Notes: generated from the letters alone by a model not told the origin. A DNA stretch of 64,000 bases from Phallusia mammillata (GCA_965637545.1 OZ281495.1:22940001-23004000), one strand, 5' to 3'; counted from the stretch's first letter, positions 15,701 through 43,387 are shown. Translations and numbers: made by a program.

Positions 15701-15865
15701 AAAAATTTTCAGCAACCAAATCCAGACTGTGACGACGATTCAACCCTTGGATTTGGCTATCCCAAGTTTGTTTCTCACAAAGAACTCAAGGACAACAACT
15801 ATTTAAAGGGAAATGCTCTTTTCATTAAAGCTACCGTCGACACATCGCGTATCATCATACCATAA
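3729..15865 (+). CDS. TRAF4: TNF receptor-associated factor 4 (RING, TRAF zinc fingers, MATH/TRAF-C domain), 468 aa
   Basis: join(3729..3871,10817..10868,13041..13145,13249..13404,13686..13853,14059..14214,15239..15865); all GT-AG and phase-consistent. N-terminus MPGYQTKFVDK...CPLCHLPMRDPVQITTCRHRYCDTCLQ; MATH domain with FYTHRYGYKL, FLNGNGSG, LLEWPF, PDPTWKNFQ, GFGYPKF. Confidence 0.96.
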
Positions 15866-16445
15866 TAGAACTTTTGTTTATCATAGCTTCAACTTTTCTC
15901 TTAGCGATGCCTTGTTACAAATCCATCATGATATAGTAATCATTTCTACCTATCATAAAAAATGTGCAGAACATGCTGGATGTGTTTTGCTGCAAATGGA
16001 TAGGCTAGCCTATTTATGCTTTGCTTATGATCTTATTGTTGCTTTCCTATTTTGACATCACTTTGTTTATTTTTTATTTCTTTAATGCGTAATGAATGTT
16101 GTTTTGTGCTCCTGTGAAAGTTTTATTATGTCGTGTGACCATTTCAGTTCCGTTTATTTTTAGCATATGTCATGGAGTTGAACATTCGAAAAAACACTGC
16201 ATGGAATTTCTGTTTTAATGTTTTATACATGGTTAGTGGTGGAACTTTGTTTTCTCCATGAACAATGTCAACCTTTTTGACAGTTCTTTTGTTTTGTTTA
16301 AGTTTGTTTGTATATTAGTCGAATCGCCAATTGACCCGACTGAAATAAATCAAGCAAAAAAACTTTTTGTGTTTCCATAATTGAAGTTTATGAAAAGGTT
16401 TCCTCATAGATGACATTTGTAGGATGCTAGTTTTAGTGGACTGAT

Positions 16446-16533
16446 AAACTGTTTCTGCAACCGAGGTGTCAAAAAGCAGTATATTGCGGAAATAGCCCAG
16501 TACTTTTTGACACTTTGGTTGCAGAAACAGTTT
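16446..16533 (+). repeat. 31-bp inverted repeat / long hairpin with 26-nt loop
   Basis: 16446-16476 (aaactgtttctgcaaccgaggtgtcaaaaag) pairs with 16503-16533 (ctttttgacactttggttgcagaaacagttt); the only two DNA mismatches are G:U pairs on the + strand. Confidence 0.9.
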
Positions 16534-16943
16534 ACAAAGTTAACCGTGTGTCATTTATAAATAATAATCAGAGAAAAAAGAGAGCGATTAGGCTTTACCC
16601 AAATTCTACTAGGTTCTTGTGAGTCACCCTTTAACTTATTTCGAGTAAAAATTGCAAACGATAAAGTCGTAAAACGGTAGGTAGGATAATAAATTTGGTC
16701 TTTATTTAATCGGCTTGTATCATTTTCCCAATGATTTTAAAACTTTTAAAATCATTGATTTTCCAACATAAAGAAAATATTTCCGTTGAATTAAATTGAC
16801 ACCCTTGACCGACTTTCGCACGCGACGTGTGAATTTATTTCGAAGTTGTCAACAACAGACGTTTACAGCTAAACAGAATTGTAATGAATGTTTTTGTTTA
16901 CAATTTAACCTGTAAATAATATTCACAGTAAGTAGTTGTTTAA

Positions 16944-17198
16944 ATGGCGAGTAAATTACCAACTGGAGTTCCTAGTTTAAAGGCCTTCATGAAACGGAAA
17001 GAGGTCTTGCAGTTGTACAAGGACATTTTAAAATGCATCTACAGAATTGATACACCAACGGACAGAAAATTTTATTTGAAGTGGGCAAAAGATGAATTTC
17101 AAAAGTACAAACACGAGACAGATGTGGAAGTGATCAACTTTCATATTAACCGTGGAAAACAGCAACTCAAACAACTTCGTGCAGGCTTGGGTGGATGA
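16944..17198 (+). CDS. LYRM2: LYR motif-containing protein 2 (mitochondrial), intronless CDS
   Basis: 84-aa ORF: LKAFMKRKEVLQLYKDIL...DRKFYLKWAKDEFQKYK...GKQQLKQL matches LYRM2 (LKQFVRRQQVLLLYRRIL...DWAREEFRRNK). Confidence 0.9.
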   Translation: MASKLPTGVPSLKAFMKRKEVLQLYKDILKCIYRIDTPTDRKFYLKWAKDEFQKYKHETDVEVINFHINRGKQQLKQLRAGLGG

Positions 17199-17693
17199 AA
17201 GTAAAAACTCTGTTTTCACAGCTTTATTGGCAAAGTCTAGGCAACTTTAATTCTAATGGTCCACAACAATGAACAAGTATTCATTGATGGATTCAGCCCC
17301 GAAGACTTTATGCAGACCAGCGGGCGTGGGACACTTAATTAAAAATCACAGTATGCCAGGCCTTCACCTTGCATGAAGCTGCTAACTCAACCATATTTTG
17401 GCTGCTTTGGCGACTGGCTTGCCCATGATGATCTAATATACCTTTTGTACCTTAATCAAATTCTAAATGGTCAGTGGAAACTGTAGTAAAAAATGTTTTT
17501 ATAGAAGATTGATGCCTAATTCTGTTTGTAGTATGTATTGTCATTTCAATGTCCTTGAAAATTTAATGAAATGATGTGAATGAAATTGATGAGCATGAAT
17601 GAAAAGAGTTTTACTAAATAGTACATGTAAATGTTTAAAATACATATTTTTGGCAGAAAAATATTTTCCAGTAGGCCAGTGTAAGAAAAAAAA

Positions 17694-18479
17694 ATGTTTG
17701 AACAGTTTGTTTGGTTGTTGGTATGTCTTGTAAATGTGGATGCCTTAAACTGGGACTCATGTACAAAGAGTTCCTGTTCGGAAGGAGTGAAGTCAATTAC
17801 CACTTCTATATGCAATGTTGACCGGAGAGGTAAAATATCACAGACGGAATTTCTTGAAAAATATGCATTTACCAAACCAGTGATTTTGACTGGTGTGTCT
17901 GATAATGCGGAATTTCAGAAGCTTTGTGAGAATGAGAGATTACTTAAAGACCATGGAAACAAAGTAGTTACTCTGAGTACTGCTAATACACACTCTTATG
18001 AAAAATTTCAAATGACATTTGCTGACTACATGGAAAAGGTTTTTGCTCATCAAGAGTACAACAAAACCGGTCCGGATACCTTGTACTGGTTCGGTAACCA
18101 TGACTACGCTGAATGGGATAGCTTGTTTAAACATTATAAGACACCACCTTATGAACTTCCTGGAAAAACCATTGCACTAAGTTTTGGTGTTGCAGGGCCG
18201 GGTACAGGTGTACCATTTCACTTTCATGGTCCAGGATTTTCAGAAGTGATTCATGGAAGCAAGAGGTGGTTTTTGCTTCCATTTGAGCAAAAACCAGATT
18301 TTGACCCCAACAAGACCACACTACGTTGGTTGTTGGAAGACTATGTTCACTTAGATGAAAGTGAAAAACCATTTGAATGTGTCATAAAACCAGGCGAAGT
18401 TTTGTATTTTCCAGATAAATGGTGGCATGCCACTTTAAATATAGAAGAGTCTGTATTTATATCATCCTTTTTAGGTTAA
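17694..18479 (+). CDS. JMJD8: JmjC domain-containing protein 8, secretory-pathway JmjC protein, intronless CDS
   Basis: 261-aa ORF with N-terminal signal peptide and JmjC motifs LSTANTHSY, LSFGVAGPGTGVPFHFHGPGFSEVIHGSKRWFL, PGEVLYFPDKWWHATLN. Confidence 0.93.
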   Translation: MFEQFVWLLVCLVNVDALNWDSCTKSSCSEGVKSITTSICNVDRRGKISQTEFLEKYAFTKPVILTGVSDNAEFQKLCENERLLKDHGNKVVTLSTANTHSYEKFQMTFADYMEKVFAHQEYNKTGPDTLYWFGNHDYAEWDSLFKHYKTPPYELPGKTIALSFGVAGPGTGVPFHFHGPGFSEVIHGSKRWFLLPFEQKPDFDPNKTTLRWLLEDYVHLDESEKPFECVIKPGEVLYFPDKWWHATLNIEESVFISSFLG

Positions 18480-18684
18480 CTGTTACTGGTCACTTATACA
18501 GTTTATTTCATACATATTTATTTTGAAAAGAGATTTTAATATTGAATGCTTTGTTTAGTGCAGTACTCAACAAGTGAAATTATGTTTATTTTTTAAAGGC
18601 TGAAATAAGTTTAAATGTTTTTAATATTGAATTTCAATGGATGGAGCATTATTGTGTTTTTTTAAAGATTGAGCATTGTAATTT

Positions 18685-18704
18685 AATAAATACATTCCTT
18701 TTAG
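18685..18704 (+). promoter_or_regulatory. JMJD8 polyadenylation signal abutting a putative trans-splice acceptor for TOP3B
   Basis: AATAAA at 18685-18690 followed by tacattccttttAG (AG at 18703-18704); TOP3B ATG at 18873. Confidence 0.45.
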
Positions 18705-18872
18705 CCTAAAAAATCTACCATTTGCTGATGGTGTTTGTAACTTTCTCATGGTTGGTTTGGTGAACAAAAATGAATCAATAATTTTGTGTAATAGAAAACT
18801 ACTTTCAATTTAGATTTGTACATAAGATTACATAACTGAACAATGAAAATGATAAATTAACAAAACAAGAAA

Positions 18873-21800
18873 ATGAGATCGGTTTTGATGGTAGCTGAGA
18901 AGCCATCTTTGGCACTGTCCATTGCTAAAATCTTGTCACGCGGGGCCCTCAATTCCAGAAAAGGTCTAAGCAATGCTTGTTCTGTCCATGAATATTCAGG
19001 TACTAAATCTATTTCAGTACAACTCACTTACGCTTTGGATTGAAATTATGCAAATAATATTTGGCATTTTATTTTTAACACATAAATTATATTTTATCAT
19101 GAACTATACATTTTTTAAATGGTTGTTTTTAGGAAAATTCCAAGGAGACATGGTGTTGTTTAAAGTCACATCAGTTTGTGGCCATGTCATGGCATTGGAC
19201 TTTGAGGGCAAGTACAACAATTGGGAGAAGGTAGATCCATCGGAACTCTTTCTTGCTCCCACATACAAAAAGGAATCTAACCCAAAACTCAACATCATTA
19301 AGTAGGAGCAGTTACAAACATTTACTTGTAAAAATGATTAGTTAATGCATTGAGTTTGCTTCCCAGATTTCTTGAGAAAGAAGCACGGAATGTTGATAGT
19401 GTTGTTCTCTGGCTTGATTGTGATAAGGAAGGGGAAAATATTTGCTTTGAGGTTTTGGACATAGTTCTTCCTATAATGAAATCAGTAAGTTGGACAAAAT
19501 ACTGCTGTTATGTAGTAATTTTACACAACACAATAATCAATGATCCACATTAAATGAAACTGCATAAACATATTTAATGCAATTATTATATACTTGTTTT
19601 ATGAAAACAGAGTGGAGCAAGCAACAAACAAAATGTATTTAGAGCCCACTTCAGTGCAATTACAGACAAAGATATACATGCTGCAATGAATTCCCTAGGT
19701 TCACCAAATGAAAATGAAGCACTCTCAGTGGATGCAAGACAAGAACTTGATTTAAGAGTGGGATGTGCTTTCACACGATTTCAGACCAAATATTTTCAGG
19801 TAGGAGTTTAATAGAAGCTAAGGTAGTTGAGATTTAAGCTTCTGTATATTGCTACTCTGATCTTTGCAAAATTTATAAAGGGCAAGTATGGAAACCTTGA
19901 TAGTTCTCTCATTTCTTATGGACCTTGTCAAACACCTACTTTGGGGTTCTGTGTTGAAAGACATGATAAAATACAATCTTTCAAACCCGAAACTTTCTGG
20001 CAAATTGATGTGGATGCCAAATGCCCAGATGATGGACCATCAATCAGACTAGATTGGGCTAGGTAGGTCATGTACAATTTCTCTATCATTCTACAAATCT
20101 AATAGTTGTTTTACCCAAAAGAAGCAGAACAGAAATAAAATTTCCAACTCAACCTTATGTACATAAAGAAATATTACATAAATTTGTTAAAAGTTCAGAA
20201 AAACTTTTTGCTCATAGCTATGTATATTTTTGTTGTACTTCACTTTTTTGTCGCGCAAAGTAAAGATTGCCGAGTGGTTAACACAAGTGCCTTTGGTTGA
20301 CAAGGTTGGAGGTATAATCCTATCTCAGTCACTTTTGTTCCTTATTGTTTAACTAAATTGTCACCAAAGTCGAAAAATGAAAAATAAAATAACTGGCAAT
20401 AAAACAGGCAATGGCGGACTCATTGTGAGCATAATGCATTCAGGCATTGCCCCTTCACTGAGCATAAAAATAAAACAAACACACATTTATTTTTCTTCAA
20501 AGGGTACGAGTTTTTGACCAACATGTTGCAAACATGTATTTGAGTTTTGTAAAAGACAAAACAAAGGCTGTTGTACAAGCTGTCAAATCTAGTGAGAAGA
20601 AGAAGGCAAGGCCAAATGCATTAAATACAGTTGAATTACTAAGAACTGCCAGCTCAGCACTTGGGATTGGACCACAGCAAACCATGCAGGTGCATTCAGT
20701 TCGAAACAAACTTAGCATTTTTTCTGTACAAAACTCACATGAAATAAAATATTATTTGCAAATTTTACAGATTGCTGAACAACTATATACCCAGGGTTAC
20801 ATCAGTTACCCTAGAACAGAAACAACCCATTATCCAGAAAATTTTGACTTCCGCGCACCTCTTAATCAACAAACAGGCAGTTCATCATGGGGCCAGTATG
20901 CAAAGATGCTGTTGCAAAATGGACCTAATAAGCCTAAAAAGGGCCATGATGCTGGTGACCATCCCCCTATTACTCCCATGAGAAGTGCATCTGAAAATGA
21001 ACTTGGTGGGGAAGATTTTACACATTAACTTAGTCAGGTTCTAAAAGAGGCTTTATTCATTGACTATAAACAGTGTTTGTTTTTATACCCGAACACAATT
21101 ACATGTTTCTTTAAAATAACACAATTATATTTAATTGCCTATTGGTTCTGTGAGTTCTGAGGAAATGTTGACATGTCATGTTAACTGAAAAGTGTGTGAT
21201 ATTTGCAGGTCATGACCACTGGAGATTGTATGACTATATTGTGAGGCATTTCTTGGCAACTCTAAGTGATGACTGCACATATCTTCACACTGAAATTGTT
21301 TTCAAAATTGGTGACGAGACATTTACATGCACAGGCAATGCTCCACTTAAACCAGGATTTACAGAGGTAACTTACACAGCTCAGACATCTTTAAAAAAAT
21401 GTTTAAGTAGACATTCTATTGATCGAAGTTCTAAATCAGGGGTGGGGAACCTTTTTGTTTATATAGGCCACCTAACGGTTTATCCACACTCGTTTAGGCC
21501 GCTTAGACAATTTCCGAGGCCAAGGATAGTTCAAAATTTTTGACTTACATAATGGTCGTTTTGCTGTTCCCTCGTAGAGTTGTAGAACTTACGGTTCAAG
21601 CTGAATAAAATTCATTACTACAACATTCAGGATTTATTTCACCTAGAAACTCGCTTGTTTACAAATATCAATGATCTAAGAACAGCTTGTGACATCACAG
21701 ACGAGTTTAAGACATTCGATTATGAGCAAACAATTGTTCTTTTTCAACACAAATAAGATTGGAGAACCTTAGGCTTTTAGTACTTCTGTTGAAATCACTT

Positions 21801-28496: not shown

Positions 28497-31400
28497 ATGG
28501 GGAAAAAGGGCTCTGCAGCCAAATCAACTGAAGCTCAGTTTTGGCAATGGACAGAGGCAAAAGACTTGACACAGATTACAGAGGATAACATTTTAACATC
28601 CTACAGATTGAAAACTCCCTCTTGTCAAAATCCTAAAAAGAATTGCCAAGGAAATCCAAAGTGCTTGCATGCATTAGGTCAGTCATATTGGACAAATTCG
28701 AATATAAGCCTGATCAATGAACAGGAAGTTGCTAAAGTCCAAAAGGAAATTGAAGCTGAGCAAAGAAAGCCAGGTGATCTTGTTGGGCTAAAAAACCTTG
28801 GAGCAACTTGTTATGTAAACACATATTTGCAGTTATGGTTGCACAATGTCAACTTTCGAAATGCAATATATTCTTTAAATGAAAGTGACTGCGACATTAC
28901 TGGCAATTATCAGCAAGTCGTTTGTGGGCAGCTCCAGTTGGTGTTCGGACTTCTTGGTGGCAGCATATGCAAAAGTATTGACCCATCTTCATTCATTCAA
29001 AGTTTAGGACTTCCCACTGATTTGCAGCAAGATGCCCAGGAGTTTTCCAAGCTGTTTATGGGTGTTTTGGAAACAAACTCCACACTTTCATCTGTCATTC
29101 AGCACCAGTTTTGTGGGGAATATGAATACCAGACTAAATGCTTGTCTTGCCAAACAATCACATCACGACCATCAAGGTTCTATGAACTTGACCTCAATAT
29201 ACAAGGCCACAAAGAATTAAAAGAGTGCATCATGGAGTTTTTAAAAAAAGAAATGCTTTGTGGTGAAAATCAATATCACTGTGATGCATGTACATGCAAA
29301 AGGGATGCTGTTAGGCAAATTTTCCTCAAAAAACTTCCACAAACATTAAGTCTGCAGCTTCTTAGGTTTGTTTATGATAAATCCTCCCAACAGAGACACA
29401 AAATTGTGACAAGTTTAACCTTTCCTGACACGCTGGATTTTTCATCAATATTAAATGGAAATGAAAATATGAGCAACTTGGAGCAAAGAGAACTACAGTA
29501 TCAGTTGTCTGCAGTCCTAATTCACAGGGGCCCAAGCGCTTCATCAGGACATTACATTGCACACATAAAAGATACTGCAAATGAAAACTGGTATAAATTT
29601 AATGATGAATCAGTGGTAAAAATGAAGACCGGCACAAAGCTTGATCTTGATGCTAACAAGGGGGAAGAAAATCTCTGGAGTGAAGCTTATGGCCCTTTAC
29701 CGAAAAAGCAACGTCTTTCAAAGGGTCACCATTCATCCAAGGATGTCTATATGCTGGTGTATGTTCAAACAAGCAGTTTATTACCCAGTAACAGATGTGT
29801 AGCAATTCCAGAAAGAATAAAGCACATGGTTGATGAGCACAACATCCAATTCCAACAACAAGCAACAGTAAGATTAACTGCGGTCCATGAAGACCAACTG
29901 AAGGCTCTAAATTACCGCAAAAGCATGCTGAATTTTGTAAAAACTTTGGAGACTGAGAGCGATGATCATGAATGGATTCATGTATCTCAGCTTAAATACT
30001 ACCTCAACCCTAACCGGCCACACAAGGGTTTGTTAAAAAATGCTAACTCATTAATTTGTTGCCATGGAAATTTGCATGTTGACAAAGTTCCTACAATGAA
30101 ATACATTCCTAAGCAGGCAGCAGATATACTGTTTGCTGAATGTAATGATCTACCAAGGTTCAAATTGAATGTGTGTAAGCCTTGTGTTGAAAACCGATGC
30201 CTACTATTGCGTAAGAAACGGCAATTGGTGAGTGATTCAGAAGTTATAGGTCAATTCATCAAAAACCTAGGCATACAATCTGATACAAAAAACTGTTTTT
30301 ATGTTGGCAAGGTATCCCTACGCAAATGGAAATCCATGGCTCTTAAAAATATACGTCTCCAACATGCAACCAAGATGTCTGATATTCCTGATGTGAATGG
30401 TTCAGCTTCAGAGAACAGTGATTCAGATGAATTTGTATTTAATTCTGATATTTTATGCTTGCATGGAAGTTTATCCACATTGGCAGCAAGTTATCAGCTT
30501 GTACCAGAATATGTATGGAAAATTTTGAGCACCTACTTTCCAGACTGTCATCAAATTAAAGGCGATTCTGATTCTTGTGCTTCTTGTATGAAAGAATCTC
30601 AGCTAGAAGAAGAAAAACTGCTTGCAATTAAAAAACTTTCACAAGAGCAGAAGTCAGACTTACATCAATTGTTTCTCAATAAAAACCGACCGCAGATAAA
30701 TGCATTTCTTTCCAATTCGTCAGATGAAAGCTGTCAAACAATCTATGTTTTGTCTGCAAATGCATTGGAAGAGTGGCGGGAGTTTGTGCGCCAACCCACA
30801 AGGCATGAACCTATATCTAAAATGAGCAACGTTGAGTTTTTGTGCCAACATTTTAGGCTACTTTACAATCCTTTGGATATGGTAAATTGTTTTCCAAGTA
30901 ATGAAGCCAACATGCCACAGTTGGTTTTGGTTTGGAGTGAAGAGTGGAAAAAGGTGAAAAAACACTTTGTCATTGACTATGCCATTAAATTATCCAAGCC
31001 TTCCATGATGGAGTGTTCTGTTATGCTCCATAAAATTGATGATCCTGCAGTAAATAATGTTCAGAATAAGGAACTTCAAAAACAAAATCCCACTGCTGAA
31101 ATGTCAGTCTTGATCCAATCAAATGTATCACAAAAGTGCAAGAAAAAAGTCTGCAATGCTGCAGAATCACACAAAACATATGATAAGTCACAGATTCTCT
31201 ACAGTCCTGAACTTTGTGCAGAATGCATAAACGATCTTGCCAACAAACAGAAGCAGTTGCTTTATGAATACAATAATGCTGATGTGTACATCCAGAAAGT
31301 TTCTGGTATCCAGACAGAAGAAACAAATTCAGGCACCAGTTTTACATGTGAATCTGCAGAAGGAAAACCCTCTCGTAGAGCTCGGAGATGTACCCGCGGT

Positions 31401-31688
31401 GAAAAGAAACTTTCTGACATTTCATCTTCCATGACCCTCAGGGATCTTAAACTGAAAATCATGAGTTTTTACTCTGTTCCACCTTTTGACCAAAATCTAT
31501 GGTTCAATGGAAAATTGCTTTCTGATGATACTGCCTCATTAGGTAGCCTGTTTATTTATCCAAATTGCACAATAACATTGATTGAGGATGAACCCAATCC
31601 TGACAATTTGCCTGTTATACTTGAATCGGTAAAAAATGTTGAACCAGAAAGGGGCTTTAAAGGAACTGGGCTAATGGGATTTCAGTAG
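28497..31688 (+). CDS. USP48: Ubiquitin carboxyl-terminal hydrolase 48, single-exon 1063-aa ORF
   Basis: Cys box GLKNLGATCYVN, QQDAQEF, His box HRGPSASSGHYIAHIKD...WYKFNDE, DUSP-type region, C-terminal Ubl (TLRDLKLKIM...PFDQNL); ends PERGFKGTGL like USP48. Confidence 0.96.
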   Translation: MGKKGSAAKSTEAQFWQWTEAKDLTQITEDNILTSYRLKTPSCQNPKKNCQGNPKCLHALGQSYWTNSNISLINEQEVAKVQKEIEAEQRKPGDLVGLKNLGATCYVNTYLQLWLHNVNFRNAIYSLNESDCDITGNYQQVVCGQLQLVFGLLGGSICKSIDPSSFIQSLGLPTDLQQDAQEFSKLFMGVLETNSTLSSVIQHQFCGEYEYQTKCLSCQTITSRPSRFYELDLNIQGHKELKECIMEFLKKEMLCGENQYHCDACTCKRDAVRQIFLKKLPQTLSLQLLRFVYDKSSQQRHKIVTSLTFPDTLDFSSILNGNENMSNLEQRELQYQLSAVLIHRGPSASSGHYIAHIKDTANENWYKFNDESVVKMKTGTKLDLDANKGEENLWSEAYGPLPKKQRLSKGHHSSKDVYMLVYVQTSSLLPSNRCVAIPERIKHMVDEHNIQFQQQATVRLTAVHEDQLKALNYRKSMLNFVKTLETESDDHEWIHVSQLKYYLNPNRPHKGLLKNANSLICCHGNLHVDKVPTMKYIPKQAADILFAECNDLPRFKLNVCKPCVENRCLLLRKKRQLVSDSEVIGQFIKNLGIQSDTKNCFYVGKVSLRKWKSMALKNIRLQHATKMSDIPDVNGSASENSDSDEFVFNSDILCLHGSLSTLAASYQLVPEYVWKILSTYFPDCHQIKGDSDSCASCMKESQLEEEKLLAIKKLSQEQKSDLHQLFLNKNRPQINAFLSNSSDESCQTIYVLSANALEEWREFVRQPTRHEPISKMSNVEFLCQHFRLLYNPLDMVNCFPSNEANMPQLVLVWSEEWKKVKKHFVIDYAIKLSKPSMMECSVMLHKIDDPAVNNVQNKELQKQNPTAEMSVLIQSNVSQKCKKKVCNAAESHKTYDKSQILYSPELCAECINDLANKQKQLLYEYNNADVYIQKVSGIQTEETNSGTSFTCESAEGKPSRRARRCTRGEKKLSDISSSMTLRDLKLKIMSFYSVPPFDQNLWFNGKLLSDDTASLGSLFIYPNCTITLIEDEPNPDNLPVILESVKNVEPERGFKGTGLMGFQ

Positions 31689-32399: not shown

Positions 32400-34402
32400 A
32401 GACACGTTCTAGTTGACATTTTAATGCTAACCCCAAACACTGCTGCTTTTGTAAATATATTTTTTTGAAACTTCTTGCAGCTCATCTATTTTTCTTGGAT
32501 GTAAGTGATTTCATTTGTTTATGTTTAAACCAGAGTATCCAATAATGTTAAAAGTTTAAAAAGGAATTTCCTTTTGATCAGAAAATTATGTTCAAAAATG
32601 ATCTAGAATCTTTTTTCATTGTTGGCAAAACATATTTTCTCCTTCTTGCCAAACTCATATATTAAATAAAGTTCAAACAGAGGGGTCATACTGTAGTATC
32701 TTAATTATCAATAAAGAGAATGAAGTGTATTGCGATTGCAATCTGGAGAATTCAACCCTAGTTATTGTTTGTAAGAAAATGTAAAAGTTTTTTTAGACTA
32801 TAATTCATAATGGGGAATAATTGAATTGTGTATGATATCACATTGAAGTGTTAAAATTATTATGATCCCATTATTACTGTTTACAAGTGTACTGCAACAA
32901 AGCCATATATGTCATAGTTACACCACAAAGCACTGCTCTTAAATAATTACAGGCCTGGTTACTTGTAGGTGGCACACTGGTCTGAGGAGAAGCGGCGCAA
33001 GGGAGCAATTACATACTACTCCTGGTGTTCAGATATCATGACATGTTAAATGCTGGCCATCATGACAATCAAGTAAGCTTGAAAGGAAATGAGTGTGATA
33101 TAAATTGCCTGCCTACTCTACCAAGCAAAGCAGTTGTGCTTTGTGGTGGTAGTTATAGTTAAGCAGTGTCATGTTTAGAATGTACCTTGTATCTGCTGTA
33201 TTGTTATAGTAGGGAATGTAAACATGTGCTTCCCTGAATGAAACAGCCACTGGTAGAACATGTTTTAGTGTACATGCACACAAAACTTATCAGTATTAAA
33301 TCATACTGACAAATTGAACTAAATGGAATTAGAAGTTAGTTACCAGTTCAAATTTATGTTTGGATACAAGGTGTAAGCTATGTGACTAATTGTAGAACAG
33401 TTAGATTGTTAGCACTAAAAGAAGTAGGTTTACGACACTCAAATAAAACAAGCAGTAAAGAGTTCAACAAAGTTGACATAAAACAGGTCAGCAAAGTGTT
33501 AGTTCCTTATACCTAAACAATGACATGACCTGCATGTTTGCAATGACGCCTGTCCTATTTCAGTGTTAGCACTGGAATGTACAACCAATCAACATGGTGT
33601 AGTTGGACTGTTGAACCTTTCATAGTTAAATTAATTTGTTATCAATACCAGTTTTTGTATTGTTGCCCTTTAGTACTTCGGATAAAAGGTTGAAGTTTTA
33701 ATGACTAATTAATGTTAACAGTGCATGCACACACATGGTGGTTTAGTGCACAGGAAGTACTAGTCACGTCCCATTGTTTTTCCCTCAGTCAGACAGTAAT
33801 TATAAATGCTAGTGAACTGGCAGCAAATCCCTGCTAGATACCAGCTGCTAATATGGAATGGAAGGCAATCAAATTTCCTGCTGTGATTTTCACTATTGAG
33901 TCTGGCAGGTAGATGTTTTGTTGCTATGTGCCCTGGTGTATTTTTTCAAGGCTCAGTGACATTATTAGATTTTGCCTGTTGGCAAGTGAATTAGTATTGG
34001 TCAGGTGCCTGTGTTTTTTCAAGTCAGCGTCTTGTTGATGTGGCATGTGGGTGTGAAAGAGATTGTGGTTGGTGGTCTAAGGCATACATCTCATGTCATC
34101 AGGATTTAATCTGCTTAGCAGTGAGCAAGTGTTTATTTGTGGCCTGCATTGCCTATTAGCTTGAGTCTGAGTCTCCTGCTGAGAAGTTTAGTGGTGATCA
34201 AAGATAATTACACTTCCTTTGTTTGCCCTGTACAGGGAATTAAGTTGCATTTTTTTTCTTTGACCCTCTGAGACACCTCTGCTGTGCACTGTAGTTGTTA
34301 TCTTGCACAGTAGTTAGAGGGATGATTTCACTTTCATTGTGCAACTGAGATAAGCAGATAATCGCAGATTGCAAAAAAGAAATCCAGAAAAGTCAGATAA
34401 AG

Positions 34403-37400
34403 ATGGAAAGGAAGAGAAGTACCAAAAGTATTAGGAGACTGTCATTGAGAAGGCCTAAACCAGCTGAAATGAATCAACCGAACATGCCATTGCCCAATGT
34501 GGAATTTGAAGATGTTCTCGGTAAACAATGTGGATGTACATATGATAAGCTTATGTAATTTTCTAGCAAGATATCATTTTTGAGGAAGATTTGTCTAAAC
34601 GTAGAAAACAAACTGTTTATAGTTGCAACAAATGATTACAACAACTAACAACTGATAGTGTGATCAGTAAATTAAATGTTCAGCTTTGTAAGTTTAAGTT
34701 TTCTCAGTATGTATGGAGTAGTCACATCATTGATGTAAACGACTTTTTAGTATATTGTGTTCTTTATACTGTTACATATTTTCTCAGCATCTCAACTGCA
34801 AGTGTCAGATGTGATTAACAACAGTGTGTTGGGTGATGGAAGCATGCACAATCTCACCAATAACTCACATTCTTCACCACACTTTCGAAGACACCAGTCC
34901 TGCCTCTATCACCGTTGCTATCACAACACTACCTTGGTTCCACTGTGGCAAGCCTTTGCTGCCCTTGACACCCGAAACTCAGGAAAATTACTGTTAGGTC
35001 GACTTATGGTAAGTTTGAAAGAATTAGGGGTTAAAATTATGCGGATTGAAAGACTTATTTTCATTGTGTTTTATAGCGCATGTCATCTGTGATGTCCAGT
35101 GTTCTTGGTGTTGAACAGCACAGTGATCAAGCCATTCAGAAGTATTTTATTCAGTTTTCACAAATTACTTTTCCCAAATACAAAAGTTATGTAATGGTAG
35201 GTTTGAATTTGTATTAAAGTGTCTGTAATACAACGTTCAAATAAAATGCATGTCGTTGGTTGTTATCAACTTTAAAACGGTTATGTTACATAACTAACCT
35301 TTTTTAGGACACAACAGCAGGAAAAATACTGGATCCTGAAGCACTGTCTGCTTATAGTTGGAGTATTTGCAAGGATCGCTATCTTAACAATCCTCTTGTG
35401 GATAACCTAGACTCAGTTGTCCCTCCTGAACTAGCTCAGGCAATCTATTGGTTGTATTGTATTTTTAACAACCTTACAGAGCCAGACACCTATCCTCCAA
35501 GCATGGATTATGAAGAGGTATGTTTTCTTTTCGTTTGACTGGAAATTACTTCTTTGCTGATTTAAAAAATACAATCTGTGCTTGCAGACCGATCTTTTGT
35601 TGCGAAAATTATTTGCTGCTCTGGGGTTGGCATGGACGTCAAATGATTTAGATTCTCAACATTATGATGATGCCAGCTCAGATTCAAACAGCAATTTTGA
35701 GCCTTCTTACCCACCTCATGTAAGTTGTATATTTTTTGTTTGCATAAAATGTCTTTTTACAACAATTCTTAAAATCGGTACATAAAAAATGATCAGTATG
35801 AATTACTTTGTGAATACAAATATTTTTTTTAATTACAAACGCATTATGTGACTTATACAGGGGAAAAATTGACCATTACGTAAAATATGGTGTCCAAATT
35901 TGTTATGTTAATGTAAAATTTTGTGCGCATATTTAAACATTTTCCTCGCAAATTCGATCGTCTCAAAATGAACAAAGAGTACGAACGGTATCTAGGAATC
36001 CCAATGTGCCGATTTCCTTTTTAGTGCAAACATCTCACATCAAAACGCTTCCTCCCTCCGCAGGTTACCTTCCAGCAGCTCTTATCAATTATCGCCGACC
36101 TGATCGGCACCGAACTTGCCAGATCCCACGCTTTTTATCGCGCCGTGCAACGCCTCTGCTTGTCCGAATACATGGAAGTGATGAAAACGGTAAGTAGGGA
36201 AATTGCACCGCGGGATATCAAATTCCCACTGTGGTTAGAATGTACTTTTGCAAGTTGCTGCTGGATTTTTATTTGCACATGACGGCCCGTCCTAGGGGAC
36301 ACCATACAGTAGGCGTGATTTTTGCTTGTATTGTTTATGCGTTTGGAAATCGAGCTTAGAAAACAAAGTGCACAAAGACTACTCAACTCGTTTTGGTTGG
36401 TGTTTCCACAACAACGTGACTCATTGTTTGTCACCGTGCCACTATGCATTACAGTTAATTGCTTCCAATAGTTGGTCCAAAATACCGATTAAAACCGTAT
36501 TTGCTGATCGAATATGTTTTCGCAAAAGTTTACTCGGGGTCATTATTCCAACGCGTTAGCAGTACGTCAGATTGCATTATGGGAGTAACTTAGCTTAGAA
36601 AACCTAATCATATTTTGTTAGTTTTGCTAAATAATGAAACTTGAATATCAAAGCATACAAGTCAATGAGCACTTTGACACAATCAACTATGCACTTTAGA
36701 TGCCGTGTGATCTGCTATTATGATCATCACTAGTCGTCTGTAACATTTTCCATTCATCTCTGCGTGCATTGCAGCGAATTTCAACCTTACACGATCAGAT
36801 GCCTCATCACACATTTGTCACGTGTTTATCTCTTTAATTCAAAGTATCCAGTTTGACAATTGTGCAAAGTGCTGTTGCACAGTTTTGACACTCGATAAAA
36901 AAGGTGAATCACTACCAAGAGTTCACCGCTAACTAAAATGCCACCAACTTCCTTTTTGAACCCTTTGCAATTTACCGATTACATTTTTGTGTTTGTGAAA
37001 AAACACGATTTTATGATACAGTAAATCTCGGCTAATACGGATCTTCGCCTAATTCGGACAAAACTCGAGATGTAAATGATTTGTAAAGTGATATAACTTG
37101 AACTAATCGACATCTGTTAATTCGGATCTTTGCAAAAAATGGACTTTTTTCTGGTCCAAACGGGTCCGGATTTGAGTTAAACATGACATGTTATTGTTTG
37201 CCACGATTTCTCAATGTTTGTATTCATGGTGTATAACATGATGTGATATGTGATACAGGGTTGGATCAACGTCCGCAAGCCTGAAACCGATGTGTGGAAG
37301 AAACGATGGGCCGCACTTCACGGGTCAAAGTTCACGCTTTACTCCGGCCAAACTTGTCTGGACTCGAAGGAGGAGATTAACCTATCCCATCACATGCATA

Positions 37401-40335
37401 TTGAGGTTAGCACTTATTGTAATCAGATTGTTTAGTGACTTTGGTCGCAACCCGAAAAAACGTCTACAATGGCCACGACCCATCATTTTGTCACAAAAGT
37501 TGTACACCTTAGCAGAATTGCGTAGTGATGTGATACAGTGGTTCATCTCGTGCACAAAACGGTACCTACAGTAGCAGTGCCAGTCTCCCTATCATTGTAT
37601 TGTTATCATTGCCTTGTGCTATTTTGGTTGCTGACGGCCGATCAGTCAATCATTGGCTTGCAACGCACGTCCGGAGTGCGCTAACATGGAAGACAAACTG
37701 CCAAACTTGTTGGTGACATGACTCTTTGCTTGTGCACATAGCACACCCACCTAATCTCACGCGCTCTTCTCACAGCTTTTGTGTATTGCCACCTCGTAGG
37801 CAATTCTCGTATTGTTTGTTGTGCAGTTTTGCAGGCTATTTTAAAGTATTGCTGACTTCTACGAAGATTATGTACAACACAGTCAATAATAATGGCTGTG
37901 TTTAAAATAACTCTATATGGGATTGACGCAGCGTTATAAAAGTTCTCAGAAGGTACACCGCAGTGCTATAAGCAGCCACAATACAATTAGTAACCACCAC
38001 AAACAATTGGTTTTTATAACTTAGTTTGTTTTTGCAGGCACTTCCAGCTACTGGTTCACAAAAGCACCGATTTCGAATTGTCGAGAAGGAAGGTGACTTT
38101 AGTATTACGTCAGAGCACGAGTTCTCAACTGCTACTCAGAAATCGTGTCTCTCCTGGCTGACGCTTCTCAGTGTTGCGATTAAAGTTACTGAAACAGGTG
38201 GGTTGATGAAACATATCTACTAAATACTAGCGTAACATTTGGTATCTTCGTGTCAGTGCCCTCATATGCAAGACTGGGTAATTTAGTAAAATTCAATTCA
38301 CTAAACCGATTAGATTTGACGAACACTTGGCATACATTATGCTGGAAAAAGGACATTACAATCGTTTGCCAGTAATAACTAGAAAACGAACACCAAAAAA
38401 CTTACATCAGAATACGTTTTTCTGTTTGATGCGTGCTTTTAGGTGAAAAAAATTAAATTAACCGGCAATCGTGCTTTTAGGGATGTCGGCGAAAACATGC
38501 GAAATTTCCGAGCGACGTTTGGAGAGGTTTCAGAGGCGGGAAAGTGAACGGGAAGTTTACAGGAAAAAGCGGGATGTCCTTGAAACATTTGATCGCCTGC
38601 AAGAAGCAAAAAAGGTAAACCACGAAATACACGTAAATAATGCATCCACATTTCTGCTGAAAAATTTACAAATTTTCATTGGACCAAAAGTATGTCTGCT
38701 TTATAAATGCATTGAAATGCGCTGTCGTAAATTTTAAAATGCCCGTTTGGCTTGTATGAACTTTGGCACAGTGAGAAGCAACAAAAACGAATGCTTAACC
38801 TTCAACGAAAAATGAAATATTTTTTACAAAGCATTTGTGAGAAGCACGTTTTGGAATTCATAGTAAACGAAACCCTTTGTTTCTTGAAGGCACGCAGTGA
38901 AGTCGAGGATGCCTTGGCCCAACGCTCACAACTCCGGGAAGCAAAAATGATTCACCTGCTCAAGATGGACAAAATTTATGAGCGACTCGAGTCGATCCAA
39001 TTCCAGCAGAGTCTCTGTAACAAAGCCGAACGCGAAAGAGGATTGCTCCGATTGTAAGTGAAAAAAACAACGTTTGTTAAACTTAGGCTTCGGGCATGTA
39101 ATGGAAGATTTGGATCGTTTGGTAACAAAGATCTTAAGATAGCTGAAACTATACCCAAGTTTGAACCCCTTGTCCCAAATATCAGCCGTTATGTGTACAT
39201 TTGCAAGGTAAAGCAATAATGCGCCAAACAATAGGCATGAAATTAACCCAGCAGAACCTAGACCAGGGGTTCTTAACCTTGGGTCCATGAACCCCCAAGG
39301 GGTCCGAGAAGATGCATTAAGGGGTCCATGAAACGAAATAGAATTATTCCGAAAATCCACATATTAAGGTTTCCACTTGATCAGGCCACAACGGCAGCCA
39401 AACATGCACCTCGAATAGTTTGAGCAATTGCAAAACCGACTTTGTGATGCAATAATGCATAACAGCTACTCTACTATTGCAAGTCTGGCATTGAAGTATA
39501 TGTGCTTTCTGCTGTGAAAGGTTACATTAAGCAGGCAAGGTTAGTAAGTTAAAAAATTTAGCAGATCATAGAAGGAATGTCGAAGAAGAGAAAGTATAAT
39601 GAAGACTATGTTGCCTTTGGTTTCACCTTCATTACTGGCAGTGAAAGACCACAATGTTTTTTCGACCTTTGCAATGTGTTTCATGCAAAGGGGTCCGTAG
39701 CTTTTCAAAGAATGATTTAGGGGTTCGTGATCCAAAAAAGGTTAAGAAACCAGCGGGATTCATCGAACTTTGTGCACTGCACTGACATAATGTGTTTTGT
39801 TCTGTGTCCTTGTGATTTCTTTCAGTTTGTTTGTTTCTGGATATATTCTACAGCCGTTACATTTTTTTGCAGACTAACCAGTTTTGAGCGAAAACTCCAC
39901 GGCGAGGATAGAACAGGGAACAGTGCGCCCAACTCCCCAGAAAAATCCGACCAGAAGAGTATGTTGACCCGCCTGGCGGCCGAAAGAGACCAACTGGAAC
40001 ATGCGCTAGAGGTCGCCATTGTTACATAAACAATTGCTCATAGTATTAAGCTTTGAAATTTAGTTAAGGCCTACCCTAAAGGTCAATACTACCATAAAAT
40101 TCGCAGCCTATGTATTTAACTTTGATTGTCGTGACAACAGGAATTGCGTATGACGCCCAGCCACCCGCCAGCCAATCACAACACGTCTAGTCGCAAACCG
40201 TCCCTGGTCATACACAGGGTCGAGTCTCTGCCACTTGAAGGGTCGTTTGATTATCGATCATCGTCGGAAAACATGTCGACCACCTCGACCGACTTCTCAC
40301 ATCTCACCCTGCCCGACATTACATTGCACACGTGA
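34403..40335 (+). CDS. SWAP70: SWAP70/DEF6 family protein (EF-hand-like N-region, PH domain, coiled coil)
   Basis: join(34403..34520,34788..35008,35077..35196,35308..35517,35588..35719,36064..36189,37259..37405,38038..38197,38481..38614,38890..39053,39873..40011,40141..40335), phase-consistent. LWQAFAALDTRNSGK resembles SWAP70 IWHAFTALDQDHSGK; IYWLYCIFNNL...LLLRKLFAALGLAW; PH domain GWINVRK...WKKRWAAL. Confidence 0.82.
37019..37170. mobile_element. Degenerate pogo/Tigger-like MITE
   Basis: TA followed by CAGTAAATCTCGGCTAATACGGA, repeated taattcgga motifs and a decayed right end (ggtccggatt). Confidence 0.45.
39264..39755 (+). mobile_element. Internally deleted Buster/Charlie hAT transposon retaining a transposase N-terminus fragment (SWAP70 intron 10)
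   Basis: TIR CAGGGGTTCTTAACCT with degenerate right TIR aggttaagaaaccagcg; left target acctagac (nnnTAnnn); 39577 onward reads MSKKRKYNEDYVAFGFTFITGSERPQC, typical of the Buster/ZBED5 BED-finger start. Confidence 0.85.
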
Positions 40336-41050
40336 CCGATCTTCGCCACCTGATTGGTTGAGGTCGAAGCCTGCACAGTGCCGAGGGTTTGTGCGTTGCT
40401 CAGTTAATGAATGTTCGCGAAGGAGGAGTTTGAAGCCGAAAAAGAGATTTGAATGGGATTGAGGAGTTTTACAATCAGCTGCCGTATGTGCCGTTCTTGT
40501 TTAGAGTTTATTTCATGTATTTGACCAGTTATTATGTAACGGAGATATGTTTTTCGACATGCATTGCGCCAGCGTTTCATGTCGCAGTTTTAACGAGAAT
40601 TTCGACCCAATTTGCAATACAAGTCAATGTGGCTTTGGAATACCACCCGATGCAGGGGTTTTAGACAGCAAAATTTATTTCAAGAACTTCACAGCGAGGC
40701 GAGAACACAAATACGAACAGTATGCACAAACTAGGACAAAAATCCAGTTTCAAGTTTGACTGCAAATTTCCAACGGGAATCCCTATGTTTGGTTTAGATT
40801 TGCCAAATCGAAAGTCTGGTTAAAAAGGGTTAAAAAAAAATTTCATCACATAACAAAAAACAATTCTTAAAAATTTGATATGGTTGTACTGGTGGTGGAA
40901 ATTTGTTTTTGTTGACTATCTAAAAAATATGAGAGCTGCATTCTATATTTGGTCGGTAAAAAATATCAAGACGGATAACACAATAGAAAATCAAAAATGT
41001 ACGTTGATATAAATCGAAACAAAAAACAGTTCATGGTCATTGTAAGTGTT

Positions 41051-42936
41051 TCACTGCGCAAAGTCATAACTTGCTGGAACATAATCAAACTCGTCTTCGT
41101 AAGGCTCCATAATTTGGTCAGCTACTCCTTGTATCTGATAACCAGCTTTTTCTCCTGTATTTGTCTCGTCGAGGTTGTCTTGTGAGCTGAAAAGTGACGG
41201 CATTTTGGCGCTAAACATTCTGGGCTGGGACCCCATAGTCGTGCGCAATTCTTGTCCAACGAGGGCTTTCAGATCTATGAAAAAAAACAAGTTTATAAGT
41301 TCTCGGTCTTTTTCATGTCCACCATTTTGAAATAAATTTGAAATATTTTTTAATCATATTTTTCGGGCGGAGAGAAATGGGTACGACAGAAATGGCGTCA
41401 CAAAATTTAAACTCATTTGTAAAGCGACACTAATTTTAATTGTTTCGTAAACGAAATTATTATTATTTTAATTTTTATTCATACCAATTAGAATAAAATA
41501 ATTGATTTGAGACCCAATTGTATTTAGTAAAATCCTATCCATTCACCAGACATTGCTAATAAAAAAAAAAATTTTTTCTATCAAATTGAAAAATTACTCA
41601 CAAATTACCCAAAAAAAAAAAAAATATTTTATTTGTAGGGTAGACCTTACTGATTTAATTGATTAATTATTTTACGGCTATTTTATTAAACTTTCTCATT
41701 GAGAAACGTTTATACCTTGAACGCGTGACATGAGATCTCTTTTGTAATCGATCAGTCGATAAACCTCATCAGTGGGAGCGCCTACGATAAAAAAAGTTTT
41801 CGTAAAATTAGGCACAAGACGCGGAATTGAAGAGCAGCATAATTAACAAATTTCCGTACGCTACTTATTTATTGATTAGATATAAAGCACGGTCAGTTTT
41901 GTAACTTAGTTTATGCAGCGTATCTCATAAATATTGTAAGATCCCAAGTTTTGTTTGAGAGCATAGCAGCAATCTTTAGGTTTATCTTCGATTTGTTGCA
42001 TTTCTAGATTTTGTCATATACTCTAAATCTTTTAAACTCATAGCTTTTAAAAAATATGAAGTTACACTACAAAATTTGCATATAAATTAGCACGCATATG
42101 TATATACAATCGGCCCATAAATAATCTTGCTTTCGTGCAAGCTGTAAAGTGTGTCAACATATCAAATCATCTCGATATTATCGCAGTGCATATGACATTG
42201 CATGTACTCGGCTGCCCCACGGCACGCTACTTAAAAACCACAGATACGCCTTACTGGCTTTCGTTGTAACGGCGCTGGTCTTCGACATTGGGATGCTGGT
42301 AGTTGCCCGTTTCGTCATGTTCTCGAGAAGTCTATGGAGCACGAGCTGCCGCAACAAACCCTGGAGTTTTCGGTTGTTGTGCTCAGTAATGGCTATGTCG
42401 GCGTTTGAAGCTCCTCTGCGTTCTCTGTAACAAAATGACGCGCTTGACGGTCCGGGGTTTATATATTGATTTTTTGATTATCTGTTTTGTCCGTACGCAA
42501 CTTCATAAAAAATCGCAAGGGTGTAGAAATTTTGTTTTAATTTTAGAAATTATTAAATTTTTAGCATATTTTATAGCGAAACAAAATTTAACTCTAAAAT
42601 TAAAAATAAATAAATGAGAGTCACAAACAAAAGAATAAACGAATTTCAAATGGCAATTTTTTTTTATCAAATCAAAATTAACAAATGTTACGTTAAACCT
42701 CAAATTTTTGTCAAAAACAGTTGCTGTCATCTAGTTCAATTAAGTTCTGTTTCAACGAGTGCGCGAGCTTAGCGCCAATATGCAATAATTATTTGATCCG
42801 CGTTTTTGTCTTTAAAAAAGCTTACTTACCTCGTTATAACTTTCCCGATGCGATTGACGTTATTCGTATTTTCCAGACTTCGGCCCGAAACTTCCCACAC
42901 AATCAAGCAAATCGCAAATAATATGGTACACTGCAT
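41051..42936 (-). CDS. Secreted prepropeptide, PTH/PTHrP/TIP39-family-like hormone precursor, 166 aa
   Basis: complement(join(42830..42936,42255..42424,41051..41274)); strong splice sites, phases 2 and 1 consistent. MQCTILFAICLIVWEVSG (signal) RSLENTNNVNRIGKVIT-RERR-GASNADIAITEHNNRKLQGLLRQLVLHRLLENMT-KR-ATTSIPM...YDFAQ*. The gene model is well supported; family assignment is by manual alignment. Confidence 0.8.
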
Positions 42937-43043
42937 TGTTTTCTTTCTAACAAGATACAGATAAATGAGTTAATACCAAAACACAAACTTTAAATATTTA
43001 ACAATGGAAAAAATATATGCCTAGAAAAAATCCAGTGACTCAC

Positions 43044-43125
43044 CTTGGCTATCTCTCGTGATTTGTTGCCGCGGTAATTTTTACACCGAAATATGATGGA
43101 GTGAAGCGTCAACGGGCACTTTATA
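43044..43125 (-). promoter_or_regulatory. TATA box, predicted TSS and non-coding first exon of the PTH-like gene
   Basis: TATAAAG at 43125-43119 (-); Inr-like TCA about 31 nt downstream (~43094); donor AAG|gtgagt after 43044; acceptor ttgttAG shortly before the ATG at 42936. Confidence 0.7.
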
Positions 43126-43367
43126 TCGGGACCCTTGTAACTTTGATTGACAGCTCTTTTTTTCAGGTCGCCCCCAATAAAGAAGAATTTCTAAACGTCC
43201 TTCCACGTAACCAACCTTGTTTTTCTTACACGCTTTTGTCTTGCTCAGTTCATGCGGGAGAATTTTACTGGCATTTTCACTGACGGTTCAAAGCGAGGTG
43301 ACAATTAACATGAGTGACATTAAGAAAAGAATACATGTTTTGTATTTTTAAATTCCTTTGTCCCTGA

Positions 43368-43387
43368 CAACAATGACGTCATTGTTG
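43368..43387. promoter_or_regulatory. Perfect 20-bp palindrome: full CRE flanked by two Sox-type sites
   Basis: CAACAATGACGTCATTGTTG contains TGACGTCA plus AACAAT and ATTGTT, about 250 bp upstream of the TATA box. Confidence 0.55.

Follow-up and report, generated by a model that had tools for sequence, protein, structure and literature searches.

A spliced and expressed peptide-precursor gene

On the minus strand of a 64,000-nucleotide stretch of the genome of the ascidian Phallusia mammillata (GCA_965637545.1, OZ281495.1:22940001-23004000; hereafter the window, with positions counted from its first letter) lies a five-exon gene encoding a precursor of 188 amino acids, in which a predicted 34-residue peptide is framed by basic cleavage sites. 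An earlier note, made from the sequence alone, had read this locus as a PTH/PTHrP/TIP39-like peptide hormone gene split over short exons in an invertebrate chordate, and the host is indeed one. The gene is real, expressed and spliced as first proposed, because RNA contigs carry the exact exon joints. The assignment to the PTH family is partly supported, and is weighed below against other readings. The transcribed features of the gene are as follows.

~43117 to 40653, minus strand: whole gene, five exons, from RNA contigs and sequence
43120-43125, minus strand: TATAAA box bordering the transcribed region on its 5' side, from sequence
43044-43117, minus strand: exon 1, non-coding, without an ATG; the contig of RNA run X2 reaches 43117
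42830-42946, minus strand: exon 2, with 10 bases of 5' untranslated region, the ATG at 42936, the signal peptide, the pro-segment and two bases of the R36 codon
42255-42424, minus strand: exon 3, with the end of the RERR site, the 34-residue peptide, KR and the first part of a Ser/Thr-rich linker
41716-41781, minus strand: exon 4, with a second KR (K106-R107, 41743-41738)
40653-41274, minus strand: exon 5, with an acidic Tyr/Phe-rich C-terminal part, the TGA stop codon at 41053-41051 and the 3' untranslated region

All four introns have GT..AG borders, and scripted joining of the exons showed that the coding exons all join in frame to give a frame of 188 codons. The joints 41274/41716, 41781/42255 and 42424/42830 are present in contigs of all four runs X1, X2, X4 and X12, which come from three studies, and the joint of exon 1 (42946/43044) is present in three of the four (X1, X2 and X4), confirming both the spliced transcript and the non-coding first exon that had been predicted. 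Contigs placed on 40700-43300 match the window with zero mismatches. In addition, when words sampled from the 2.15-kb stretch were sought in nine RNA-type runs from the same organism, a fraction of 0.07-0.30 was present, approximately the exonic share of the stretch; for the runs behind the contigs the fraction is 0.22-0.30. Four canonical in-frame splices with RNA confirmation are far beyond chance. The first coding intron cuts the R36 codon after its second base, four residues ahead of the cleavage point, so that the phase-2 intron described just before the basic cleavage site was correctly placed.

Contig starts range from 43117 to 43074, and the main transcription start is probably some 25-30 bases downstream of the TATAAA box, with some reads beginning right after it. 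At the other end, contigs terminate at ~40699 (X4) and ~40653 (X12), and an AATAAA signal lies at 40679-40674 on the minus strand, with the RNA end 20-25 bases beyond it. The gene is apparently absent from the protein collections searched, and is therefore likely missing from current annotations of the species.

Three smaller observations concern the transcript and its surroundings. A low-depth contig of run X1 (depth 4.2 vs 24) covers 42091-42256 and runs unspliced from intron 3 into exon 3; it represents pre-mRNA or a retained intron, and read-through of intron 3 would terminate the protein 29 residues beyond exon 3. At 40838, in the 3' untranslated region, the X12 contig is four bases shorter than the window, which is an indel polymorphism between individuals. 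Approximately 260 bases upstream of the 5' end of the gene, at 43374-43381, stands a perfect palindromic cyclic AMP (cAMP)-response element, TGACGTCA; the window holds three such elements where about one is expected, a count reached in 8 of 100 shuffles and weak when taken alone.

Layout of the precursor

The translated product has exactly the layout that had been claimed for it, with a signal peptide, a pro-segment, an RERR site, a 34-residue peptide, KR and a C-terminal extension that carries a second KR, and it is very probably a processed secretory precursor. Its parts are placed as follows.

42936-42883, minus strand: predicted signal peptide M1-G18, read from sequence
42313-42414, minus strand: predicted mature 34-residue peptide G40-T73, a helix like those of class-B1 ligands
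42307-42312, minus strand: KR dibasic site K74-R75 after the peptide, from sequence
42313-42321, minus strand: N-M-T sequon formed by peptide residues 32-34, a possible site of N-glycosylation, from translation

The signal sequence has the hydrophobic core CTILFAICLIVW, followed by V-S-G ahead of the predicted cleavage position, and the pro-segment of 21 residues extends from R19 to the furin-type site R-E-R-R39. After the first KR come a Ser/Thr-rich stretch of 30 residues, K106-R107 and an acidic Tyr/Phe-rich tail of 81 residues. Since no Gly stands ahead of the first KR, the 34-mer should not be amidated. An AlphaFold2 model of the exon-3 product places the RERR-peptide-KR part in one continuous helix, with a predicted local distance difference test score (pLDDT) of 96-98 in its core, and in coil afterwards. 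In the PTH family, too, the active part of the secreted prepro-peptide starts right behind a basic pro-site.

The end of the tail (41054-41130) is very acidic, with Tyr beside Asp or Glu in E-P-Y-E-D-E-F-D-Y and S-Y-D-F, and the tail of the Ciona gene described below is similar in character. A Tyr next to Asp or Glu is the usual setting of tyrosine sulfation.

Similarity to the PTH family in the N-terminal register

As class-B1 receptors read their ligands from the free N-terminus, an ungapped comparison anchored at the N-terminus is meaningful for this peptide. The 34-mer was scored at offsets from -12 to +12 on an alignment of human TIP39, PTHrP(1-36) and PTH(1-34), the letters of which were verified against chains in the PDB (7f16_P for TIP39). 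On recomputation, PTH and PTHrP align to TIP39 only at a shift of +2, and the same equivalence is given in the cryo-electron microscopy paper on PTH2R, where Asp6 corresponds to Glu4, Ala5 and Ala9 to Ser3 and Leu7, and Trp25 to Trp23 (10.1101/2021.06.09.447485).

From residue 1, the 34-mer scores 16 against TIP39, 28 against PTHrP and 17 against PTH, a sum of +61, while the remaining 24 offsets are all negative, the next best being -12. The in-register score has a shuffle p of ~1-2e-5 with BLOSUM62, BLOSUM45 and PAM250, and p is 4e-4 to 6e-4 if the offset is left free. With the hydrophobic/polar pattern held fixed, p stays at 0.001-0.0025, which argues that the PTH-family signal is more than an amphipathic pattern. 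Fourteen other class-B ligands placed on the same alignment score 20 or less, and of the 24,566 34-mers without a stop that the window yields in its six frames, a score of 61 is reached only by the one starting right after RERR. Among the best four 34-mers per locus by combined PTH-family-plus-candidate score, drawn from ~36,500 34-mers at six tunicate loci, none has a PTH-family score above 27. Against the pair of PTH and PTHrP, the candidate scores 45 and TIP39 scores 42; its likeness to the PTH family is thus about that of the family's own most distant member. The resemblance is statistically real in these alignments, and it falls in the register defined by the complex structures of PTH1R and PTH2R.

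The matching columns are those of functional importance, namely D6, I7, I9, R15, L17, L20, R22, L26, L30 and M33, opposite PTH E4, I5, L7, K13, L15, M18/L18, R20, L24, L28 and V31. At the activation end, the acidic D6 stands at PTH position 4 (TIP39 position 6), followed by the hydrophobic I7 and I9 at PTH positions 5 and 7, and in the binding helix R22, L26, L30 and M33 stand at PTH positions 20, 24, 28 and 31. The gap-free alignment to TIP39 put forward in the earlier note, with A5, D6, A8, R15, L17, L20, R22 and L26 shared, is correct at all eight positions when read against 7f16_P. Its comparison of the C-terminal half with the receptor-binding helix of PTHrP also holds, as L17-M33 scores 31 against PTHrP 15-31. 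We consider the balance to tip slightly towards a prohormone gene whose 34-mer would be the ligand of a PTH-type class-B1 receptor, and it seems reasonably probable that the 34-mer is a class-B1 ligand of some kind.

Gene neighbourhood and a probable Ciona counterpart

The neighbours of the gene in the window are a TRAF-like gene, a JmjC gene, TOP3B, MsrB, USP48, CCDC28, a PH-domain gene, UNK and copine. In Ciona (GCA_018327825.2), TOP3B, USP48, CCDC28 and the PH-domain gene are followed by a convergent gene on the minus strand, whose product of 207 amino acids has no Pfam match and whose last 35 codons (105 bases) lie within the locus compared (L001) and whose beginning lies just past position 2,039,880 of AP043570.1. 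Phallusia has the same gene order, with the candidate as the convergent gene, and exons of the PH-domain gene are recognisable in both species. The C-terminal ends read S-Y-D-F-A-Q in Phallusia and Q-Y-D-L-T-Q in Ciona. When the last 34 residues are anchored at their ends, there are seven identities with a shuffle p of ~5e-4, while ordinary local alignment of the two C-termini is not significant. Because of the conserved gene order and the C-terminal likeness, the Ciona gene is probably the orthologue of the candidate, in a comparison that covers the C-terminal tail rather than the 34-mer, and such orthology would show the gene to be old within the phlebobranch ascidians. USP48, a single-exon gene at 28497-31685, is 100% identical to a UniProt entry of Phallusia mammillata, which identifies the species of the window. 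It is only 46-48% identical to its nearest counterparts in other tunicates (Clavelina and Ciona), and orthologues of the peptide precursor are therefore expected to be very diverged.

The block formed by TOP3B, (MsrB), USP48, CCDC28, the PH-domain gene and the small convergent gene (20500-49300 of the window) is common to Phallusia and Ciona and, in part, to Clavelina, and for tunicates such microsynteny is unusually well preserved. The next gene in Phallusia is UNK, on the minus strand, and at the Clavelina locus the compared block ends inside the PH gene. The PH-domain gene (34400-40650, plus strand) and the peptide gene (40653-41050, minus strand) converge with their 3' ends within a few hundred bases of each other, and Ciona has the same convergent arrangement with ~400 bases between the stop codons. 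At a locus of another tunicate (L005, an ENA assembly; USP48 45% identical), the last UNK exon comes after CCDC28 (13168-19789), and no recognisable PH-domain gene, peptide gene or PTH-like 34-mer was found between CCDC28 and UNK; the PH-domain/peptide-gene block has been lost or moved in this lineage. A scan of a further locus (L006) found no PTH-like 34-mer, and its extension (L007) holds open reading frames of transposon type.

Competing assignments of the 34-residue peptide

Several observations weigh against placing the peptide in the PTH family. Searches of exons 2, 3 and 5 against Pfam at E<=10 returned no match, including to the PTH, TIP39, secretin-type and CRF models. A phmmer search of exon 3 against 1.84 billion cluster representatives yielded no genuine match (the sole one, P0001, a bacterial-type repeat protein, was rejected as spurious, its score being the sum of eight weak repeats), and phmmer against the PDB returned nothing for the candidate. 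No meaningful neighbour was found in the ESM Atlas (scores <=0.54), two word-indexed homology searches, made with the frames free of stops that surround exons 3 and 5 and confined to proteins of 54-175 amino acids, shorter than the 188-residue product, returned nothing, and a metagenome scan found no relative. A three-sequence hidden Markov model gave the candidate 5 bits, with a shuffle p of ~0.016, by a method too weak even for TIP39. Within the peptide, Val25 stands at PTH position 23, where it is hydrophobic but the family has Trp or Phe, and the PTH residues V2, Q6 and H9 are not kept. The N-M-T sequon could be glycosylated, which would be a caveat for receptor binding. The neighbours in the window recall none of the vertebrate PTH loci (11p15, 12p11, 19q13), and the conservation with Ciona seen so far is in the C-terminal tail and not in the peptide. 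A matrix of seven secretin-superfamily members also peaks on the candidate, with p 0.002 at offset -3, so that the assignment to one family is not firm. Finally, as the candidate was selected from a very large scan, the p-values above should be discounted.

The blank homology searches carry little weight, because the same tools miss true members of the PTH family among themselves: with phmmer against the PDB, human PTH misses natural PTHrP, and TIP39 misses both PTH and PTHrP. A hidden Markov model of PTH and PTHrP likewise gives the true member TIP39 only 6.9 bits, compared to 5.3 for the candidate.

The gene might instead encode a secreted peptide or protein that is lineage-specific and has no relation to class-B ligands, its likeness to them arising from an amphipathic helix and from selection in a scan that spans very many windows and families. 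The functional product may then be the acidic, Tyr-rich tail, or else the protein as a whole. The lack of relatives in every profile and sequence search, the modest p of the three-sequence model and the C-terminal location of the Ciona conservation speak for such an origin. Against this stand a register score that is still significant with the hydrophobic pattern fixed (p ~0.002), an optimum located precisely at the residue that follows the furin site, the presence of all the equivalents of the functionally critical D6, R22 and L26, and a length and flanking basic sites that fit a processed peptide. We regard a lineage-specific origin as rather unlikely.

At offset -3, secretin, VIP and GHRH score 22, 19 and 14 (letters verified against the PDB), each with p ~0.001 in register, and this offset places D6 of the candidate on their conserved Asp3, which the structure paper equates with TIP39 Asp6 (10.1101/2021.06.09.447485). 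In the same register, A-D-x-x-I-T of the candidate lies opposite A-D-A-I-F-T of GHRH, and the N-terminal half scores 13 against VIP, compared to 6 against PTH and 3 against TIP39. PTH, PTHrP and TIP39 themselves peak weakly against the secretin matrix at the same structural register, and with the PTH matrix the peak lies at +3 for five of the seven secretin-family peptides. Against the secretin-superfamily matrix, the candidate scores 9.6, compared to 3.7 or less for any vertebrate PTH-family peptide. The C-terminal half of the peptide thus appears PTHrP-like and the N-terminal half equally VIP/GHRH-like, with the whole closest to the PTH family.

One interpretation of this double likeness, though an unlikely one, is that the 34-mer is an undivided class-B1 ligand of ancestral type, a living intermediate between the PTH and the secretin/glucagon families. 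If so, it would be a ligand for either or both of the tunicate receptors called PTHR-like or GCGR-like, and it would be direct sequence evidence for a common origin of both ligand families, like that of their receptors. A rival reading, in which the peptide is a class-B1 ligand of the secretin/glucagon/PACAP or undivided ancestral kind, is not a PTH orthologue and acts on receptors that others class as GCGR-like, draws on the scores at offset -3 and the VIP likeness of the N-terminal half, and on the naming of the two Ciona receptors as GCGR-like by Cardoso 2020. It sits poorly with the mean score per member, which is 9.6 for the secretin superfamily and 20.3 for the PTH family, twice as high, and with the C-terminal half, which at 31 is clearly PTHrP-like. 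In addition, His/Tyr1 of the secretin family must be the free N-terminus, while its equivalent in the candidate is Asn4, preceded by three residues; Gly4 and Phe6 of that family are absent, with the Asp and Thr kept, and the Pfam model Hormone_2 has no match to the candidate. We hold this rival reading to be improbable.

A CRF/urocortin/DH44-type peptide, suggested by H-N-N-R-K-L recalling CRF H-S-N-R-K-L, by a local ungapped CRF match of 32 (p ~0.01) and by 8/34 identities with urocortin 1 in register 0 (p 0.01), is rejected as highly implausible, since p is 0.3-0.6 with the CRF-family matrices whatever the offset, the two matches sit in incompatible registers, the motif lies mid-peptide rather than at an amidated C-terminus and no Gly precedes KR, and 34 residues are too few for a family of 38-41 that also has no Pfam match here.

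Set beside the other class-B families, CRF is rejected, and secretin, VIP and GHRH come nearly equal to the PTH family but lower. The reading of the gene as that of a PTH/PTHrP/TIP39-like hormone is supported by its register-specific similarity (p ~2e-5), and is weakened by the missing profile match, the missing aromatic residue at PTH position 23 and the near-equality of the secretin group. The level that these comparisons support is that of a putative ligand of a G-protein-coupled receptor (GPCR) of class B1, closest to PTH, PTHrP and TIP39, rather than firm membership in the PTH family.

Proposed processing and receptor activation

Under the preferred reading of a PTH-type ligand, the signal peptide would be cut off after G18, furin or a prohormone convertase would cleave after R-E-R-R39 and at K74-R75, and a carboxypeptidase would remove the basic residues. 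The product would be a non-amidated peptide of 34 residues forming one long amphipathic helix, with the Ser/Thr-rich linker peptide of 30 residues and the acidic C-terminal peptide of 81 residues as by-products or further products. The receptor would be a class-B1 (secretin-type) GPCR of the PTH-receptor type, with the 34-mer as its agonist. A5, D6, I7 and I9 in the N-terminal part of the peptide would enter the transmembrane pocket, and D6 would stand in for TIP39 Asp6 and PTH Glu4; these two residues are linked to Arg2.60b by a salt bridge and to Tyr1.47b by a hydrogen bond (10.1101/2021.06.09.447485). The C-terminal hydrophobic face of R22, V25, L26, L30 and M33 (PTH R20, W23, L24, L28 and V31) would dock on the extracellular domain, and signalling would proceed via Gs and cAMP.

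Significance and comparison with known systems

Tunicates are the closest living relatives of vertebrates and possess GPCRs resembling the PTH receptor, yet have neither bone nor a parathyroid gland. With this locus come an exact precursor, backed by RNA, and a 34-mer of defined sequence that is open to synthesis and to testing on tunicate PTH-type receptors, making testable the question of what role PTH-type signalling had before skeletons. In addition, the PTH and the secretin/VIP/GHRH matches fall in one structurally consistent register, which bears on whether both ligand families go back to a single ancestor.

To our knowledge, the peptide predictions of Mirabeau and Joly (2013) predate any Phallusia genome, and On et al. 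(2015) reportedly described bfPTH1/2 in amphioxus. In Ciona, two PTHR-like receptors have been described, and BLAST at that time gave no PTH or TIP39 gene (PMC3483286). Reviews credit PTH-like peptide genes of tunicates and amphioxus to Mirabeau and Joly 2013 (PMC4354418, PMC5640766). The novelty of the present gene accordingly lies in a defined, RNA-supported peptide and not in the existence of urochordate PTH-like peptides, which by these reviews have been predicted since 2013. The letters of the 34-mer and of the tails were not found in the literature searched, nor was a tunicate PTH-like ligand paired with its receptor.

Among known systems, the predicted PTH-like peptides of tunicates and amphioxus stand for a like idea, namely that invertebrate chordates equipped with PTHR-like receptors have a ligand of PTH type as well (PMC4354418, PMC5640766). 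Secretin resembles the candidate in the Leu/Arg/Gln-rich character of the C-terminal half, with overall scores below those of the PTH family.

TIP39 (PTH2), the ligand of PTH2R, shares 8/34 identities with the candidate, gap-free from residue 1. Both peptides have two extra N-terminal residues relative to PTH, and in both a basic pro-site immediately precedes the peptide. With its 39 residues, TIP39 ends its own precursor, while behind the 34 residues of the candidate come KR and another 113 residues, spread over two more exons, and Trp25 and Phe10 of TIP39 are Val and Thr in the candidate.

In the vertebrate PTH gene the first exon is non-coding and an intron stands shortly ahead of the basic cleavage site; the present gene has two coding exons beyond the PTH layout. 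Compared to PTHrP and PTH, the candidate has the two extra N-terminal residues, and it keeps the equivalents of R20, L24, L28/I28 and V31/I31, together with those of E4 (D6), I5 (I7) and L7 (I9). The PTHrP precursor, like that of the candidate, runs on beyond its hormone with further basic sites.

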